The position numbers and the translations under genes are program-made. This document shows, piece after piece, positions 6,047-15,264 of a DNA stretch of 64,000 nucleotides (positions are counted from its first letter, which is position 1; every line of letters begins with the position of its first letter). The notes below the pieces were generated by a model, which was not told the DNA's origin, did no database searches, and was given only the letters and a program-made list of their open reading frames with translations. Origin of the DNA: Ylistrum balloti (Eukaryota); assembly GCF_031769215.1 (NCBI RefSeq), contig NW_026782110.1, positions 434,001 through 498,000 of the forward strand, given 5' to 3'.

Positions 6047-6424
6047 ACAGGGCCTTTTGTTTGAAACCTGGAAGGCACTGAAGAAAATCCAATGTCACCA
6101 CAAGAAATCTTAAAACCTAGACTAGAAAGTGTATTAACCCTATAAACAAAGCTAAACTGTTACCGAGTATATACTGCATACAGTATTTCAGTATCTTGTC
6201 GAATGTAAAATAAGTAGATAACTTTCATGATCGAAAAGAAACTTGTCACATTAAATGAGAAGAATAAGTGGTTAAGTCTTTTATTGATCAGATCTACATT
6301 GACTTCGACCTGATATTGTGAGTTTCCGAGACATAATGCACCGTGTTATGTAATTCTAAAAAACCATAGATGTTTTAACGCAGTGGTATATTGTGTTCGT
6401 GAGTATGTAACCATAGTGTTTTAT

Positions 6425-7023
6425 GTATCATACAGGATTTCTCCTGGTGTTGTATCATACAGGATTTCTCCTGGTGTTGTATCATACAGGATTTCTCCTG
6501 GTGTTGCAGCATACAGGATTTCTCCTGATGTGGTATCGTACAGGATTTCTCCTGGTGTTGTATCATACAGGATTTCTCCTGGTGTTGCATCATACAGGAT
6601 TTCTCCTGATGTGGTATCGTACAGGATTTCTCCTGGTGTTGTATCATACAGGATTTCTCCTGGTGTTGTATCGTACAGGATTTCTCCTGGTGTTGTATCA
6701 TACAGGATTTCTCCTGGTGTTGCATCATACAGGATTTCTCCTGATGTGGTATCGTACAGGATTTCTCCTGGTGTTGTATCATACAGGATTTCTCCTGATG
6801 TGGTATCGTACAGGATTTCTCCTGGTGTTGTATCATACAGGATTTCTCCTGATGTTGTATCGTACAGGATTTCTCCTGGTGTTGCATCATACAGGATTTC
6901 TCCTGATGTGGTATCGTACAGGATTTCTCCTGGTGTTGTATCATACAGGATTTCTCCTGGTGTTGTATCGTACAGGATTTCTCCTGGTGTTGCATCATAC
7001 AGGATTTCTCCTGGTATTGTATG
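6425..7023. repeat. 27-bp minisatellite, ~22 copies
   Basis: Unit gtatcatacaggatttctcctggtgtt with recurring variants (gcatc, gatgtg, tcgtac). Confidence 0.95.
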
Positions 7024-7916
7024 ATACGGTCTTTGTCACGGAGATCAATTGGTAATATTTTATCGTACCAGTTTGTCTTTACACAGATTACCAGATTGCT
7101 GAAAACTCCGTTAATAACATAAATCTGTATCATTGTCTATAAGATATCATACCAACAAATAAACATACTGATACATATATTCTATATAATGTACAACAAA
7201 TAAGGAATGCAACATTTTTGAGTCAACGTAAATAGAGGCAATACACAAGATAACTGGTTTGAGGTGGAAGTAATGTTATTCTATATAATGGCCTGCTTCC
7301 ACAGGTAGGCGAATACTCTTGCATAAAAATATCCATTTAATAAAGATTGCAAACAGCAGATGCCTTCCTCACGTAATTCATCTAATTGATTATCAATAAT
7401 ACTAATGATCATTATCCTCTTCGACAAAATGTACTCCTTGATGTAAGCCTAGCCATAACTCGTTATTATAACACTAATTTTTGGCACATCCTATGACAGA
7501 TGTTCATCATCAGTGTGTATTTGTTTGGAAAATTACGGCAACAGAAAAGGAAAATTAATTCTATGCTAACCTAGAAACTCTGCTTGTAAATCAGATTTAT
7601 TTACTTTCCACCGACTTAATAGCCCTGGGATTGTGGTCATTCTGTAGAGAATTGTCCTCAACTCTTCTTCCTCCATTGTCCTCTTTTCACTATTCAAAGA
7701 CAACTCGTCCTTAACTCCCTCCCTACACCAACAGATTCTACACTTCTAAAGAATAAATCCGACTTTTTTTATTAATATATCCATTACCGATACTGGAGTC
7801 TTTTTTAAGTAAACTTGACTTTTCATTTATTCATTCTACAATATTTTGGATCTGCTTGTCAATTTCATGGAGCCAGCATATGATTGTGAGTGTGTATGGA
7901 TAGTTGATAGACTCTG

Positions 7917-8382
7917 TGTGGTGTCTCAAACTTTTATTTATCTGTTTATCATGCAAGAGTTGTCTCCGGGGAGGACAGCAGTATCACACACAGAACCTCC
8001 GGAGAGGGTAAGAAACTGAAATTAATAAAATGTTCGACTTATAACAGAAATCTCAATGCATTAGAAGGCTTACCAAGCAAACACGTGTTCCGGTTTACAA
8101 ATCACGCTTCGAATAAATCCCAGTTCTAGGTAAGATTATCGACTTTGACACAGTTAATGCACTAAATTACTGTTATGTACATACATCTTACATGGTACTT
8201 ACTCAATGGTTAGCACTAGATCTAAATGACACATGAAGATAATTGTGTAAAACAGCTCCTAGCTGTACTGAAAAACACAAGTAAACAAACTGGAAATCAC
8301 AACAAGTCCGATAACTCTTGCAGAACTTTAAAGATGCGCGTTCCATAATACAGCAGAAAATATAAACTTTTATAACATCACA
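7917..8382 (-). repeat. 3' LTR (466 bp, TG...CA)
   Basis: On the minus strand it begins TGTGATG right after the PPT and ends CACCACA; AATAAA at 7933-7938, 16 nt from the end. Confidence 0.93.
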
Positions 8383-8555: not shown

Positions 8556-11500
8556 TCACTCTGTGGAAATTAGTGGTACCAACTGGGTAATTGGCCTTAT
8601 GTAGGTCGTTCTTACACCATCACGGCACACTGCTACTTCGACTTTCCGAACCTTGCCGTCATCGCTTAGAAATGTTCTTTGCACCAAAGCCAGAGGCCAC
8701 TCAACACGAGGGCTCTGATCATCCCGCATCAATGCTATGTCCCCCATTTGGAAGTTCGGAAGTCCCTGACGCCATTTAGGCCTCACCTGCAAACCGACAA
8801 GGTACTCTTTTTTCCACCTATCCCAGAAGTTGTTGGCAAGATTTTGAACCTGTTTCCATTGGATCCTGTAAGAATCCTTCAAATTGACATCCGTGAGTTG
8901 ACATGTGGGTAATTCTGGTGATTTTTGTGTCAACAACACGGAAGGTGAGAGTACACCTGGATCCTCTGGATCCGTTGAAACAGCGACAATGGGTCTAGAG
9001 TTTATGATAGCTGTGACCTCTGCCATGAGTGTTGTCAGTACCTCGTGTGTGAGCTCCTTTCCTTTCACGTCGAGTAACATGGAGTCAAGTATTCTGCGCG
9101 TAGTACCGATCATCCTCTCCCAGATGCCACCCATATGTGAAGCATGAGGTGGGTTGAACCGCCAAACAGTGCCGATGTTGACAAGATGATTAGACATCTC
9201 CATGTCTTCGACGTTGATAGCTTGGATTCCGACAGCATCGGTGGATCCGACGAAATTTGTCCCCCTGTCCGACCGAAAAACACTGACAGGTCCACGAATC
9301 GAATAGAACCTGCGAAGGGCATTGATAAACGAGGATGACGACATATCTTCAATGACCTCGATGTGTACCGCCCGTATGACTAGGCACGTAAATAGCGCAG
9401 CCCATCTTTTCTGCTGGGAATGGGATCCTCTGGTTCGACGAAAGGAGATATACCATGGTCCAAAAATGTCCACTCCAACGTATGTAAATGGGGGCGAAGG
9501 AGTGAGGCGATCTGCTGGCAGATCAGCCATGAGCTGAACAGCGGTCTTTCCACGTAAACGACGACAACGAACGCACTTATGGATGAGAGATGAGATTAGC
9601 CTCTTGGACCCGGTGATCCAGAAACCGGCGGAGCGGACAGCGCCTGCAGTGAAGTGTCGACCTTGGTGATGAACCTTGGCATGGAAGTGAAGAACGATCA
9701 ACTTCGCTGTATGGTGTTTGCCAGGAAGAATAACTGGGTTCTTCTCCAATGAATTGTATCCAGATTTGTTCAGTCGACCCCCTACCCTCAAAATCCCTTC
9801 CTCGTCCAAATAAGGTGAAAGTGATGAAATGTGACTGTCTTTAGGAATAGGTTTTGAATTTTGTAGGTTCCGGATTTCCTTTGGGAAAGCCTCTTTCTGG
9901 GTCTCTCTAAGTATGACTCGTTTTGCTCTCTCCAGATTCGAAAGTTTTCCAGTTCCCGCGCTCCCCTCCTTGGAATCGAAACTCCCCTCCTTAGTTTTGA
10001 AACGCTGAACAAACCAGAGCAGATTCCCTATGGCACGGGTAAGGGATGTCCAGCCAGAAAACCTCTGGAATCTCTCTGAACCAAGACTATCGTGGCTGTT
10101 AGAAGTCAACGACTTAAGCGCGACAACATTCCGGACTTCGGCGTCCGTCTGAGGACTGATAAGAGGAAAATCCTGGTTGCAAAGAATTTCACAGTCAAGA
10201 AGAAGCGAAGGGCCCCTCAACCAAGGACTTTGATCAAGTTGACCTGCATCAATACATCTGGTTCCGATATCCGCCGGGTTCATGTTGGTAGGAACATGAT
10301 GCCATTGTGTTGGTTTGCTGACGTTCAAAATTCTGTCAATACGGTTGGCCACATACGTGTAGAAGCGACGAACTCTGTTATTTATGTAGCCGAGGACGAC
10401 ATTGCTATCAGAGTGGTAACGGATATCTGCTGGGTTGACATCTAATTGATCAGCGATGATCTGTCCAAGCTCGGTAGCAAGGACAGCGGAACAAAGTTCT
10501 AATCGTGGAATAGTATGCCCATGATGAGGGGCTACTTTGGCCTTTCCTAGAACAAAGCAGACGTGAGAGTTTCCATCGTCTTCCGTGATCTTAAAATACG
10601 CTACTGCTGCAATGGCGTCCTTGGACGCATCACAAAATACGTGCAGACATTGTTTCATTCCTTGATGAAGTCGTACCTCACAGTATGACCTACGGACCTT
10701 ACAGTAGTTTAACTCCTTCAGGGACCTTTTCCACAACTCCCAGTCCCGTCGACTGTCTTCGGGAAGCGGATCGTCCCAACCCAATGTTGATGAAATGAGA
10801 TCCCTAAAGAGCAGCTTCCCTTTGAGGACAACAGGAGCTGCAAAGCCGAGTGGATCATATAGACCGTTTATCGTTGCTAAGATCCCACGTCGGGTATATG
10901 GCTTATCCTCAAGATGTGAGTTGAATGTAAAGAAGTCCCCTGCCAGGTTCCAGGAGAGCCCTAGACTTCTCTGTACAGGTTGGGAGTCGACGCTCATGTT
11001 CAAGTTCTTAATATCTCCCGCAAGCTCGTCTGGGCCGAAAGCCTCAAGCACATCCCTCCTGTTGGATGCGACCTTGTGAAGTCTTATATTACCATTTGTT
11101 CGTAATGTATGCTGAGTGCGTTTCATCAAGGACACAGCTGTATCGGCGTCATAAGTCGATGTCAGACCATCATCGACATAGAAGTTACGATGAACAAATT
11201 CCTTCACATCAGCATCCGCTCCCTCGACAGCTTGTCTGAGACCATAAGTGGCCACTGCAGGTGATGGCGAATTTCCAAAGACATGTGCTGTCATACGGTA
11301 TTCGATAAGCTGTTTTGATGTGTTATTGTCTTCATGCCAGAAGAACCGGAGAAAATTCCGATGTGATTTATCCACCTTAAAACAGTAGAACATCTGCTCG
11401 ACGTCACCTGTAATGGCTACAGGCTTAGTGCGGAACCTCAAAAGTACACCAAGTAAACTGTTGACTAAGTCTGGCCCTGTCATAAGTACGCTGTTGAGCG

Positions 11501-14500
11501 AGATGCCATTACATCGAGCAGATGAGTCAAATACTGCTCTTATCTTATCAGGCTTTTTGGGGTGGTATATGCCGAAGAGAGGAAGGTACCAACGTTCTTC
11601 ACCATCCTTCAGAGGAGGAGCGACTTCGGCATGCCCTTTGTTCAATATCTTGGCCATAAACTCAGTCATGTGAGCACGCTTTACAGCGTCTCTGTGTAGA
11701 CTCCTGTCCAAGGACATTGCTCTTTGTAAGGCCTGAGATCTGTTGTCAGGAAGTCTAGGTCGATCTGGCTTGAATGGAAGGGGAGCTGACCAGTTTCCCT
11801 CTGAATTCTTTTTCATGCAGGAATCCATTATATGAAGAAACTCCTTGTCCTCCACTGAGAAGCCTGGCACATCATCGTTTGGTCCTTTGAGGTAAACAGG
11901 GAAACAGGGCTCTGGGCTGTCCGCCTTTACCTCAAAGCAATTAGGACAGGGTTCCATCAAGGAAGGACGTCCATTTCTCAGGGTGTAAGTCTTGTTGCTA
12001 GTGACGAAAGGTGTCTGATGAACACTTCCAAGACAGACTTCACCAATAATTACCCATCCAAGTTTGAGTCTTTGCCCATAAGGCCCATCAGGTGGACCAA
12101 TCTTCTGGTCTTCCACATGGTGTGCAGTGGGGAGGTCTCGCCCTATGAGCATCATAATATCGGCTTTAGGATCTAATGCCGGAAGGTAATCTGCTATCTC
12201 ACGTAAATGGGGGTGATGAAAGGCAGCCTCCGGAGTCGGTATCTCATCCCGGGCATCTGGTATCATGTCACACTCAATCAAATCTGGTAGATCAATAGCC
12301 GTTGTGCCATCAAGAGACTCAACAACATATCCTCTTGCTTTTCTTCCTGAAGCTGAAATGTAGCCTGAGCATGAGGATAGCGTATACTCGGTGTGGTTGC
12401 CTTCTTCGCCAAAGTAGTCAAAGAAACTAGTCCTAGCAAGTGTTTGGTTACTCTGATCGTCAATGATGGCATAGAGTCTGAGAGCTTGGTCTGGCTGGCC
12501 AGTAGGGTACACCTTCACAAGGACAGTCTTCGCGCAGGATTTACTCATGCCCAAGGGATTCTTGCACACCTGTGTACATGTTGAATTAACAGGGTTTGTA
12601 GGAGTTGTTTTAGCCTGTTCTTTATCTGGAACTGATGACTTGCTAAGAGGAGTTGTAATGTGTAGAGCTGACGGGTGTCGGTTACTGTTGCAAATTTCAC
12701 ATTTTATGGCTATATCACAATCCTTGGCCAAGTGTTTTCCAGGGCCACAGCACCTAAAGCAGAGAGAGTTCTCACGAAGAAACTTCTTCCTTTCCTCTAT
12801 AGGCTTCGATCTGAAACCTCTACATTTGTTGAGCGTGTGTTTTGTCTTATGTAAAGGACAGGACAGGGCAAGCTCTGATGGTTTTTCCACCTCAGTTTTT
12901 CTTGCAGATACCAAAACCTTGGGAGGTCTGTTTCCTGTTTTGACAGGTTTTGACATTGTGGTAGACGCATCTGGCTGGTCATATTTGAACCCAGGGTCAT
13001 TTCTCGCCCTTGCAATGTCGCGCAGGAATTCTATGAAAACAGTGAAAGGAGGGTATGACGCACCATGGTTTTTCTTGTACTTGATGCCATGTGTAGTCCA
13101 CCTTTGCTGTATACTAACAGGTAACTTGGCCACTATAGGGTTTACTCCAGAAGATGAGTCATAGTATGCCAACAAAGTAGAGTATTGTTTGTCTGCTTTC
13201 CTAGCAGCAATCTCGGATACAAGGTCAACAAGTTCGAACAATCGACTACTGTCTTTGTTTGAAATATTGGGGAAAGCAGCGACACGGGCTTTCAGACAAG
13301 CCTCCACCATCTCTGGACCAGCATAACGATCCTCTAATCTTTCCCAGATTCTTGCCACCCCTACCTTAGGGTCCTCAGGGTATGCAGATCTTATGTTCAG
13401 GGCTTGCCTGCTGGAATCTGCACCTAGCCATTTTACCAGGAGGTCCATTTCCTCTGTAGCAGAAGCTCCAAGCTCTGTTATGATACCTCTGAAGCTAGAT
13501 TTCCATACAGCATAGGTCTCTGGGCAGTCTGTGAACTTAGTGAGTCTAGAGAGGAGTAAATCCTTTTTCAAGAGGTACTTTGAGAACTCAGCACACATAT
13601 CAAAATGATGATTTGTAGGTGATGGGTGAAATTCTTGCGCATCCGGGTTCAAGGCATTTGTCGTTGGTGAGGTAATTGCATATGATATATTGTTGGTTGA
13701 AGTGACTGATGATATGTCTAACAATGGCAATGGACCCGGAGTGGACGACATTTGTTTACCTTGTTTTGAAGGCTGTAGCGTACGTGGTTCGGGGTTTCCA
13801 GGCAACGTATTGGCATTGGAGGTACATGTAGGTAACTCAAAATGAGGTAAGTATCCTTGGGAGGATTGTAACAAAGTGGGTGAACAGTCAAACCTGACCT
13901 GAGTTAAAGGTATATGGCTATAACACCCTGATGCTTCATCGATACATGACTCAGATCCCTTATGAGACGACACGCTACTCCCTCTGACAAACTTACTTAC
14001 TGGTTCAGGTTCTGAGGAGAGATTAAGCCTCAAGTTCTGTTCCTCGACAAATCGTGTCACTCTAGTTGACCTTTCTCCTGACTCATACGACAAACTGCTG
14101 TCATCACTGTCACTTTGTTGTTCTAGCATAGTTCTAAGCTTGGCCTCAGCTTCCTTAACTTCCCTTTTTACCGCCAATACATCAAGTTCCGCTTGGAGCA
14201 CAGCTTGTTGTTTTTTAATTGAAGCCTCTTCCTCTGCGAGCTTTAGTCGCTCCCTCTTAATCTCGGTGTCAGTCCTCTGTTGTTTAACCATGGACCTTGT
14301 AGATGAGGCTGATGTCCTCGACCTATGTTTTGATGATACATGTGTGTTCACAGATCCCTGTGTTGATTTCATAGACTTATGTTTTGATGGCACATGTGCG
14401 TTAACAGACCCTTGTGCTGATAAAGTTGGTTTACTTTCTGCTAATCCAGCGTTGATCATTGATAAGGCTCTTTGGTACTTGTCTGTCAAAACATTTAGAA

Positions 14501-14864
14501 TAAGTAACTGTGATGAGTATTCCCTGCTACTCTGGTTACATGGGTTTCTGGACAGGAAGGACATGAACTCTGTCGAGACCTTTTTAAAATCTGCGAAGGT
14601 GCTGGTGAGGTCATCCTTAATGTTGCTGATGTCGGCCAGTGGGCTGGTGGCTGCGTTAAACAACGCAGATAATACTGATTCTAGATTTTTTCGTTTGTTT
14701 GACATGTTTCTATGGTATTTAAGAACAGCATGCTCAAATTGTTCCATACCTTTGGTGCTTTTTGTCCGGGGACGGGAGCCTGTGACTGATGACGTCATTT
14801 GCATGCCGGTCGTTGATTTCTTACTGTGGTGTCTCAAACTTTTATTTATCTGTTTATCATGCAA
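8556..14864 (-). CDS. BEL/Pao Gag-Pol polyprotein (Gag with zinc knuckles, aspartic protease, RT, RNase H, integrase); 2,102 aa from the ATG inside the LTR R region, alternative start at 14804
   Basis: CPLH..H..NKC, CFRC..KH..KDC, CEIC..RH; protease IIDDQS (12450-12461); RT WYLP..KIRAVFD and FYVDD (11169-11180); RNase H VFCDAS and DSNVVLGYI; integrase H..VHHQG..CVRC, GVDIFGP, SDRGTNF, WERMIG. No stop or frameshift; no env. Confidence 0.96.
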   Translation of the reverse strand: MHDKQINKSLRHHSKKSTTGMQMTSSVTGSRPRTKSTKGMEQFEHAVLKYHRNMSNKRKNLESVLSALFNAATSPLADISNIKDDLTSTFADFKKVSTEFMSFLSRNPCNQSSREYSSQLLILNVLTDKYQRALSMINAGLAESKPTLSAQGSVNAHVPSKHKSMKSTQGSVNTHVSSKHRSRTSASSTRSMVKQQRTDTEIKRERLKLAEEEASIKKQQAVLQAELDVLAVKREVKEAEAKLRTMLEQQSDSDDSSLSYESGERSTRVTRFVEEQNLRLNLSSEPEPVSKFVRGSSVSSHKGSESCIDEASGCYSHIPLTQVRFDCSPTLLQSSQGYLPHFELPTCTSNANTLPGNPEPRTLQPSKQGKQMSSTPGPLPLLDISSVTSTNNISYAITSPTTNALNPDAQEFHPSPTNHHFDMCAEFSKYLLKKDLLLSRLTKFTDCPETYAVWKSSFRGIITELGASATEEMDLLVKWLGADSSRQALNIRSAYPEDPKVGVARIWERLEDRYAGPEMVEACLKARVAAFPNISNKDSSRLFELVDLVSEIAARKADKQYSTLLAYYDSSSGVNPIVAKLPVSIQQRWTTHGIKYKKNHGASYPPFTVFIEFLRDIARARNDPGFKYDQPDASTTMSKPVKTGNRPPKVLVSARKTEVEKPSELALSCPLHKTKHTLNKCRGFRSKPIEERKKFLRENSLCFRCCGPGKHLAKDCDIAIKCEICNSNRHPSALHITTPLSKSSVPDKEQAKTTPTNPVNSTCTQVCKNPLGMSKSCAKTVLVKVYPTGQPDQALRLYAIIDDQSNQTLARTSFFDYFGEEGNHTEYTLSSCSGYISASGRKARGYVVESLDGTTAIDLPDLIECDMIPDARDEIPTPEAAFHHPHLREIADYLPALDPKADIMMLIGRDLPTAHHVEDQKIGPPDGPYGQRLKLGWVIIGEVCLGSVHQTPFVTSNKTYTLRNGRPSLMEPCPNCFEVKADSPEPCFPVYLKGPNDDVPGFSVEDKEFLHIMDSCMKKNSEGNWSAPLPFKPDRPRLPDNRSQALQRAMSLDRSLHRDAVKRAHMTEFMAKILNKGHAEVAPPLKDGEERWYLPLFGIYHPKKPDKIRAVFDSSARCNGISLNSVLMTGPDLVNSLLGVLLRFRTKPVAITGDVEQMFYCFKVDKSHRNFLRFFWHEDNNTSKQLIEYRMTAHVFGNSPSPAVATYGLRQAVEGADADVKEFVHRNFYVDDGLTSTYDADTAVSLMKRTQHTLRTNGNIRLHKVASNRRDVLEAFGPDELAGDIKNLNMSVDSQPVQRSLGLSWNLAGDFFTFNSHLEDKPYTRRGILATINGLYDPLGFAAPVVLKGKLLFRDLISSTLGWDDPLPEDSRRDWELWKRSLKELNYCKVRRSYCEVRLHQGMKQCLHVFCDASKDAIAAVAYFKITEDDGNSHVCFVLGKAKVAPHHGHTIPRLELCSAVLATELGQIIADQLDVNPADIRYHSDSNVVLGYINNRVRRFYTYVANRIDRILNVSKPTQWHHVPTNMNPADIGTRCIDAGQLDQSPWLRGPSLLLDCEILCNQDFPLISPQTDAEVRNVVALKSLTSNSHDSLGSERFQRFSGWTSLTRAIGNLLWFVQRFKTKEGSFDSKEGSAGTGKLSNLERAKRVILRETQKEAFPKEIRNLQNSKPIPKDSHISSLSPYLDEEGILRVGGRLNKSGYNSLEKNPVILPGKHHTAKLIVLHFHAKVHHQGRHFTAGAVRSAGFWITGSKRLISSLIHKCVRCRRLRGKTAVQLMADLPADRLTPSPPFTYVGVDIFGPWYISFRRTRGSHSQQKRWAALFTCLVIRAVHIEVIEDMSSSSFINALRRFYSIRGPVSVFRSDRGTNFVGSTDAVGIQAINVEDMEMSNHLVNIGTVWRFNPPHASHMGGIWERMIGTTRRILDSMLLDVKGKELTHEVLTTLMAEVTAIINSRPIVAVSTDPEDPGVLSPSVLLTQKSPELPTCQLTDVNLKDSYRIQWKQVQNLANNFWDRWKKEYLVGLQVRPKWRQGLPNFQMGDIALMRDDQSPRVEWPLALVQRTFLSDDGKVRKVEVAVCRDGVRTTYIRPITQLVPLISTE
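14816..14824 (-). promoter_or_regulatory. PBS position, non-canonical (GTAAGAAAT); candidate self-priming site
   Basis: Directly abuts the 5' LTR end, lacks the TGG of tRNA-primed PBSs, and is complementary to LTR sequence GTTTCTTAC (14924-14916). Confidence 0.55.
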
Positions 14865-15264
14865 GAGTTGTCTCCGGGGAGGACAGCAGTATCACACACA
14901 GAACCTCCGGAGAGGGTAAGAAACTGAAATTAATAAAATGTTCGACTTATAACAGAAATCTCAATGCATTAGAAGGCTTACCAAGCAAACACGTGTTCCG
15001 GTTTACAAATCACGCTTCGAATAAATCCCAGTTCTAGGTAAGATTATCGACTTTGACACAGTTAATGCACTAAATTACTGTTATGTACATACATCTTACA
15101 TGGTACTTACTCAATGGTTAGCACTATATCTAAATGACACATGAAGATAATTGTGTAAAACAGCTCCTAGCTGTACTGAAAAACACAAGTAAACAAACTG
15201 GAAATCACAACAAGTCCGATAACTCTTGCAGAACTTTAAAGATGCGCGTTCCATAATACAGCAG
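14825..15264 (-). repeat. 5' LTR, missing its outer 26 bp
   Basis: Identical to 7917-8356 except one substitution (G8219 vs T15127); homology stops at 15264, where the 1.8-kb array begins. Confidence 0.93.
14922..14952 (-). promoter_or_regulatory. LTR core promoter: TATAA (14951-14947) and initiator TCAGTT (14927-14922), predicted +1 = A14925
   Basis: TATA start to Inr A spacing of 26 nt; TCAGTT matches the invertebrate TCAKTY initiator consensus. Confidence 0.6.

Follow-up and report, generated by a model that had tools for sequence, protein, structure and literature searches.

A BEL/Pao retrotransposon of Ylistrum balloti probably primes its reverse transcription with its own RNA, spliced across an intron in the long terminal repeat

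Minus-strand DNA synthesis by the Tf1 retrotransposon of Schizosaccharomyces pombe is primed by the first 11 nucleotides (nt) of its own mRNA, which RNase H releases. In the sections of two papers that bear on the subject, self-priming is given as established for the Tf1/sushi group of Ty3/gypsy and as predicted for the TAR lineage of Ty1/copia (PMC6317226, PMC6934838). For the TAR elements, which are found in plants and include Houba and Osr-1, self-priming outside the Tf1 group is, as in the present study, a computational prediction; they differ from the elements described here in being copia elements, and the section that concerns them mentions no intron or splice junction (PMC6317226). In the BEL/Pao superfamily, the olive fly element Achilles carries 18 nt that are complementary to the 3′ terminus of a transfer RNA (tRNA), tRNA-Tyr (PMC4580426). 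Here we analyze 64,000 nt of DNA from Ylistrum balloti (NCBI RefSeq assembly GCF_031769215.1, contig NW_026782110.1, positions 434,001 to 498,000; below, this whole stretch is called the window, and positions are counted from its first letter). The window contains an intact BEL/Pao long terminal repeat (LTR) retrotransposon on the minus strand, and we think it likely that this element primes minus-strand synthesis with its own spliced LTR RNA and not with a tRNA.

The bases that follow the 5′ LTR of the window element, GTAAGAAAT, are not a TGG-type site. Their complement is in the LTR itself, in two pieces that flank an intron, as follows.

15111..15114, minus strand: last 4 nt of LTR exon 1, TTGA, which pair with primer-site nt 9-12 after intron removal
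14924..15110, minus strand: LTR intron of the spliceosomal type, 187 nt, GTAAGT...polypyrimidine-CAG; it holds the TATAA discussed below
14916..14923, minus strand: beginning of LTR exon 2 (8 nt), TTTCTTAC, which would form the 3′ portion of the self-primer; the last C pairs with G14824
14813..14824, minus strand: primer binding site, GTAAGAAATCAA, which begins at the first base past the LTR and is conserved genome-wide in copies that bear a 5′ LTR

Removing the intron joins TTGA to TTTCTTAC, and the product, TTGATTTCTTAC, is a perfect complement of the 12 bases past the LTR (GTAAGAAATCAA).

The same arrangement was found in 11 families of BEL elements (41 to 60% amino acid identity to the window element), the LTRs of which were defined by LTR pairs and target-site duplications. 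Five of the families are in this genome: that of the window element, C517, C937/C374, C350/C23, and a second element on C1212, with reverse transcriptases (RTs) 56 to 60% identical to that of the window element. The other six (L076, L078, L089, L094, L106, and L117/L121; 41 to 51% identity) are on metagenome contigs carrying BEL relatives. In each of the four other genome families, the post-LTR bases differ from those of the window element and complement the family's own LTR. The complement begins directly past a polypyrimidine-YAG acceptor (6 to 10 nt) and runs on, unbroken, in the 3 to 8 nt before a GTAAGT, GTGAGT, or GTAACT donor that is 117 to 868 nt upstream. The metagenome families have an equal design, with introns of 90 to 696 nt and complements of 11 to 16 nt. 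Across the 11 families, the complements are 12, 11, 15, 15, 11, 11, 11, 13, 12, 13, and 16 nt long; exon 1 contributes 3 to 9 nt, and the junction is 6 to 9 nt from the primer 3′ end. The best donor/acceptor pair was canonical (GT[AG]A.. and polypyrimidine-YAG) in all 11.

When the introns are removed, positions 1 to 11, counted from the primer 3′ end, form Watson-Crick pairs in 11 of 11 families, and positions 3, 4, 5, and 7 to 11 covary, with 2 to 4 types of pair at each. In the unspliced form, positions 8, 9, 10, and 11 pair in only 6, 4, 1, and 1 families, respectively. The 3′ C of the primer (position 1) pairs with the first post-LTR base in every family, and the primer ends in an invariant ..AC opposite GT. 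LTRs scored 11 to 16 with their own sites versus 0 to 10 with the sites of other families (the best noncognate scores were 5 to 10). Even with any GT..AG pair allowed, shuffled primer sites reached the observed score in only 0 to 2 of 1000 to 2000 trials per family. Because the first base past the LTR is where minus-strand synthesis starts, and because the complement is anchored at that base in all families, the complement identifies the primer. And because the complement extends past a GT..AG intron to the exon on its upstream side, the RNA that primes would be spliced and would contain sequence upstream of 15110. On this comparative evidence, self-priming of the element is well supported.

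In every spliced leader, the helix between the primer and the site is part of the minimum-energy fold, and the start codon of the element is near (the ATG is 8 nt past the site). The helix could thus have another role, in the control of splicing, in packaging, or in translation, with something else as the primer. We consider this highly improbable, because in every family the complement is anchored at the first post-LTR base, by definition the start of the minus strand, and because neither an alternative primer site nor a tRNA match was found.

The element resembles Tf1/Tf2 and the Tf1/sushi group in that both lack a tRNA site and have post-LTR bases that complement RNA derived from their own LTRs. 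The Tf1 complement is about 11 nt, and 11 nt is also the shortest complement among the BEL families; in both cases the 3′ end of the primer abuts the LTR end, and a structured loop separates the primer from the site. There are two differences. The window element has a Pao peptidase and belongs to the BEL/Pao superfamily, whereas Tf1 belongs to Ty3/gypsy. And, unlike the Tf1 primer, the BEL primer is not contiguous in the DNA: an intron of 90 to 868 nt interrupts it 6 to 9 nt from its 3′ terminus, and it is thus formed only by splicing. Splice sites in LTR-derived leaders have precedents. Human T-cell leukemia virus type 1 (HTLV-1) and bovine leukemia virus (BLV) have a splice donor in the repeat (R) region of the LTR and an acceptor far downstream, and splicing makes subgenomic mRNAs. 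The functional splice site inside an LTR-derived leader is common to these viruses and the window element; unlike those of HTLV-1 and BLV, the donor and acceptor of the window element are both in the LTR, and the spliced product matches the primer site.

There are BEL elements that use a tRNA. Achilles, with its tRNA-Tyr complement (PMC4580426), shares its superfamily and overall layout with the window element. A metagenome contig carries another relative, L112 (420-440), with a TGG-type sequence 6 nt past its LTR and no self-complement in the LTR, which is 227 nt long; judged by these motifs, it is apparently tRNA primed, so both priming modes seem to be represented among relatives that are about 50% identical. 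It could be argued, then, that a host tRNA or tRNA fragment also primes the window element and that the match to the LTR is due to chance. However, the 11 families, unlike Achilles, have no tRNA complement, and they have 11 different sites, each of which matches its own LTR junction; therefore, tRNAs cannot explain the sites. We searched the genome with the 16-mer that is the reverse complement of the window site; the initial annotation of this DNA had suggested a search of the host tRNAs. Matches occurred at chance level, at the same rate as with a reversed control, and exact matches were found only in copies of the window element. No tRNA was among the matches inspected, the full host tRNA set not having been extracted. 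Rfam and ARAGORN gave no match in the leader or the window, and we found no site with complementarity to a tRNA, whether to its 3′ end or to an internal portion. (A recurrent 14-nt near-match to the primer sequence was a 75-bp tandem repeat and not a tRNA [L073, C64:1020860-1021140].) Priming by a tRNA is thus, in our opinion, extremely improbable.

The intron was detected by searching the genome with the LTR and comparing the copies that lack the equivalent of window positions 15110-14924. The 187-nt stretch, with its GTAAGT start and its pyrimidine-rich end terminating in CAG, is precisely absent from both LTRs of the integrated copies on C378, C461, and C1212, and the break points of the deletion are unambiguous (GT..AG). 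The C378 copy has two intron-less LTRs, a target duplication (ATTGT), an open reading frame (ORF) of 2111 amino acids (aa), and 100% identity in the RT segment searched; these features mark it as the product of a recent retrotransposition of an RNA that had lost the intron by splicing. The copies on C461 and C1212 are at different sites and have in common an intron-less LTR with diverged R and unique 5′ (U5) regions. A genome-wide LTR search found no intron-containing member of this subtype. That LTRs of an intron-less subfamily were inserted separately at least twice argues that the promoter is not within the intron. Intron loss is also evident in a second family, in which an 851-nt GT..AG stretch of the C937 LTR is lacking from the otherwise equal C374 LTR. 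Both C374 LTRs have this deletion; its donor is 17 nt downstream of the main donor, and its acceptor is identical to the main one.

These results bear on an earlier form of the self-priming model. The initial annotation proposed that transcription starts inside the LTR, at A14925, and that, as in Tf1, the primer site pairs with nucleotides 2 to 10 of the mRNA in its unspliced form. Much of what it described is correct. The LTR does end with CACCACA at 14825 and is not followed by a TGG-type site; between GTTTCTTAC (14924-14916), at the 5′ end predicted for the mRNA, and GTAAGAAAT there are 8 Watson-Crick pairs and 1 G-U; the 3′ C of the primer pairs with the base adjacent to the LTR terminus, which holds in all 11 families; and the hairpin at 14913-14871 is in the minimum-energy fold. 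The sequences taken as promoter and initiator, TATAA (14951-14947) and TCAGTT (14927-14922), are also present, the TATAAG 26 nt upstream of the predicted start and the TCAGTT a fit to the initiator consensus. However, the TATAA is inside the intron, and the TCAG is the 3′ end of the intron (GTAAGT...TTTCAG), that is, the 3′ splice site. The sister families conserve the polypyrimidine-YAG acceptor and a GTRAGT donor, not TATAA/TCAGTT; a TATA and an initiator are absent at this place in C517, in C937, and in the metagenome families. LTRs without the intron, and hence without this "promoter," are still found in at least two separate insertions. In addition, a primer from unspliced RNA leaves the complement to the last 3 to 9 nt of exon 1 unexplained in 11 of 11 families. 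Because the complement spans the splice junction, the start cannot be at 14925, and the extent of pairing is corrected from 9 pairs to 12 nt after intron removal. Priming by unspliced nucleotides 2 to 10 is therefore very unlikely. What stands is the broader proposal of self-priming in a BEL element, for which the complementarity to the element's own LTR RNA and the compensatory changes among related elements, a test that the initial annotation had suggested, both argue.

A spliced junction also could come from the other end of the RNA. The 3′ end of any full-length RNA has exon 1, the intron, and exon 2, so the primer might be the spliced junction of the 3′ LTR copy, on the same or a copackaged molecule. 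Transcription would then start at or after the acceptor, and the intron would be in the unique 3′ (U3) region. The TATAAG and TCAGTT of the window element are correctly spaced before the acceptor for such a start, and loss of the intron from both LTRs proves only that the 3′ copy is spliced. We consider this explanation unlikely. Cutting the 3′ copy would deprive the RNA of its own 3′ R, on which strand transfer depends; the TATA and initiator at the acceptor are not conserved in the sister families; and the separate insertions of the intron-less subfamily argue for a promoter upstream of the intron.

Priming by the spliced 5′ leader, the explanation that we prefer, would proceed as follows; the enzyme that cleaves the RNA, the choice between priming in cis and in trans, and the transcription start are what we infer. 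Transcription of the LTR, from a start upstream of the donor, would take in a short exon 1, the intron, and exon 2; a primer derived from the 5′ end of the RNA would require that start to be upstream of 15110. Splicing of the 5′ intron would join the last 3 to 9 nt of exon 1 to the first 6 to 9 nt of exon 2, giving the 11- to 16-nt complement. The junction sequence would then fold back on, or anneal to, the primer site, in cis enclosing the 40 to 159 nt of the LTR that remain. By analogy with Tf1, the element's RNase H would cut the RNA after the terminal ..AC, and the new 3′ OH would be extended into the LTR end. The resulting minus-strand strong-stop DNA (40 to 159 nt) would transfer to the 3′ R and use the 3′ end of the RNA to copy what remains of the LTR. 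The intron would be copied from the 3′ LTR if that copy is unspliced, so most progeny would keep the intron and some would lose it from both LTRs; both outcomes are observed. In a broader version, a large BEL/Pao clade that crosses phyla makes its primer by splicing, and the spliceosome is a licensing switch for replication: the LTR intron would split the primer, only RNA with a spliced leader would anneal fully and start cDNA synthesis, and progeny with intron-less LTRs would be a by-product of splicing of the 3′ copy. We regard the chances for and against this extension as evenly balanced.

Several points weigh against priming by the spliced leader. Two of them concern the RNA itself. Among contigs from public runs (Logan; RNA status uncertain, about 92% alike), one has the unspliced LTR and one has the spliced joint 14923>15111, but this joint also occurs as DNA, in a DNA run, so the run contigs are not proof of a spliced RNA. 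Across the families, a promoter search upstream of the donor turned up neither a conserved TATA nor a conserved initiator (a CCA motif is present 4 to 8 nt before the donor in the mollusc-type families only). The length of exon 1 is a difficulty in either direction. A primer that is, as in Tf1, the extreme 5′ end of the mRNA would leave exon 1 with only 3 to 9 nt, an unusually small length for splicing; with a long exon 1, the primer would have an unpaired 5′ tail, the handling of which in plus-strand transfer is unexplained. As for the comparison, 6 of the 11 families are from anonymous metagenome contigs, the C461 copy has one changed junction base without a compensating change in its site, and C233 fits only partly, with 8 nt at the acceptor, an ambiguous LTR end, and a tandem array.

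The C233 locus (L059/L060) consists of BEL elements in tandem that share LTRs (element-LTR-element). Besides the 8-nt complement linked to the acceptor, its LTR has a second, contiguous, 10-nt near-copy about 70 nt upstream. At L103, a short LTR has a contiguous 11-nt complement, which is the intron-less state. For C165, no LTR pair was found. When the pattern was scanned for with no LTR boundaries defined, the background was high (20 real sites versus 13 and 6 control sites), and hits were kept only if they had a ..CA|GT signature upstream of an ORF or were after an LTR in tandem arrays. Those with the signature, L077 and L096, and those with the tandem-array position, L080 and L114, are the additional candidates; L108 and L115 were not retained. 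Compared to C350 (L065), the C23 copy (L067, 1460-1900) has an acceptor in which AG has become AT, lengthening the T run, and a primer site with one extra A. Anecdotally, this change is compatible with the 5′ part of the site having been copied from the primer.

The remaining features of the window element are as follows.

15264-14825, minus strand: 5′ LTR as present, 440 nt; the first 26 nt of the full 466-nt LTR are missing, and it adjoins a 1803-bp satellite
14871..14913, minus strand: hairpin 2 nt past the primer, containing the palindrome CTCCGGAG; in the minimum-energy fold
14841..14846, minus strand: polyadenylation signal, AATAAA, with its end 16 nt short of the LTR end
8556..14804, minus strand: single intact gag-pol ORF, 2082 aa, with its ATG at 14804, 8 nt past the primer site
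8392-8383, minus strand: polypurine tract, AGGAGGGGAG, immediately before the 3′ LTR
8382-7917, minus strand: complete 3′ LTR, 466 nt, TGTGATG...CACCACA, directly after the polypurine tract
8016-8202, minus strand: intron in the 3′ LTR, the same one as in the 5′ LTR

The two LTRs of the element are identical at 439 of 440 positions (15264-14825 versus 7917-8356). The full LTR start, TGTGATG, was read from other copies and from the window's 3′ LTR. Because 5-bp target-site duplications (GGGAC, TCCTA, AGCCT, ATTGT, and CTTAT) surround other copies, the LTR end at 14825 is well placed; because the 5′ LTR of the window copy is truncated, its own duplication is not verifiable. Since the AATAAA is 16 nt from the LTR end, R would reach almost to that end, and U5 would be very short. 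The hairpin is specific to the window subfamily, its second arm being replaced in the C461/C1212 subfamily. Its first arm includes, at 14905-14912, 3 nt past the primer, the perfect 8-nt palindrome CTCCGGAG, and the family C517 has CTCCGGGG at the equivalent position. Speculatively, these palindromes might be RNA dimerization sites.

The ORF product has the Pfam domains Peptidase_A17 (Pao peptidase, E = 1e-43) and DUF5641, and its best homologues are full-length BEL polyproteins of molluscs, including scallops, of about 1,200 to 2,140 aa with rve (PF00665). By its Pao-type peptidase and gag-pol, the element is classed, from sequence, as a member of BEL/Pao (Belpaoviridae), and it has the structure of such elements: TG..CA LTR ends, a polypurine tract, and short target-site duplications (the duplications being those of other copies). 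The gag part of the ORF contains a 54-nt tandem duplication, at 80% identity, at 14310-14417.

The truncated 5′ LTR is the exact starting point of a tandem array of a 1803-bp unit, which extends from 15265 to beyond 30000 and contains at least eight copies at 99 to 100% identity; the similarity of the LTR-adjoining unit to the rest is only about 71%. The 3′ flank of the element (below 7917) is not this satellite; therefore, the insertion site has been rearranged. A 27-bp tandem repeat array of about 33 units is downstream of the element, at 6289-7179. The copy on C420 (L003, at about position 1500) lacks the same first 26 nt of its 5′ LTR as does the window copy. The flanks of these two copies differ, and neither copy has a matching target duplication; both 3′ LTRs and all solo LTRs keep the 26 nt. 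A recurrent alternative cDNA end is one possible explanation of the shared loss.

In the full-text literature outside subscription journals, we found no report of self-priming in BEL/Pao or of a primer split by an intron. If our interpretation is correct, self-priming would extend to a third LTR superfamily, with an added feature that we did not find described, the assembly of the primer by splicing of an LTR intron. It would explain why tRNA-based searches for primer sites fail with these BEL elements, and it would give annotators a simple signature by which to recognize them, with length variants of the LTR explained as spliced copies. It also predicts that these elements would escape silencing of primer sites by tRNA fragments. 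Finally, it would be a link between splicing and the choice of the RNA that is reverse transcribed.

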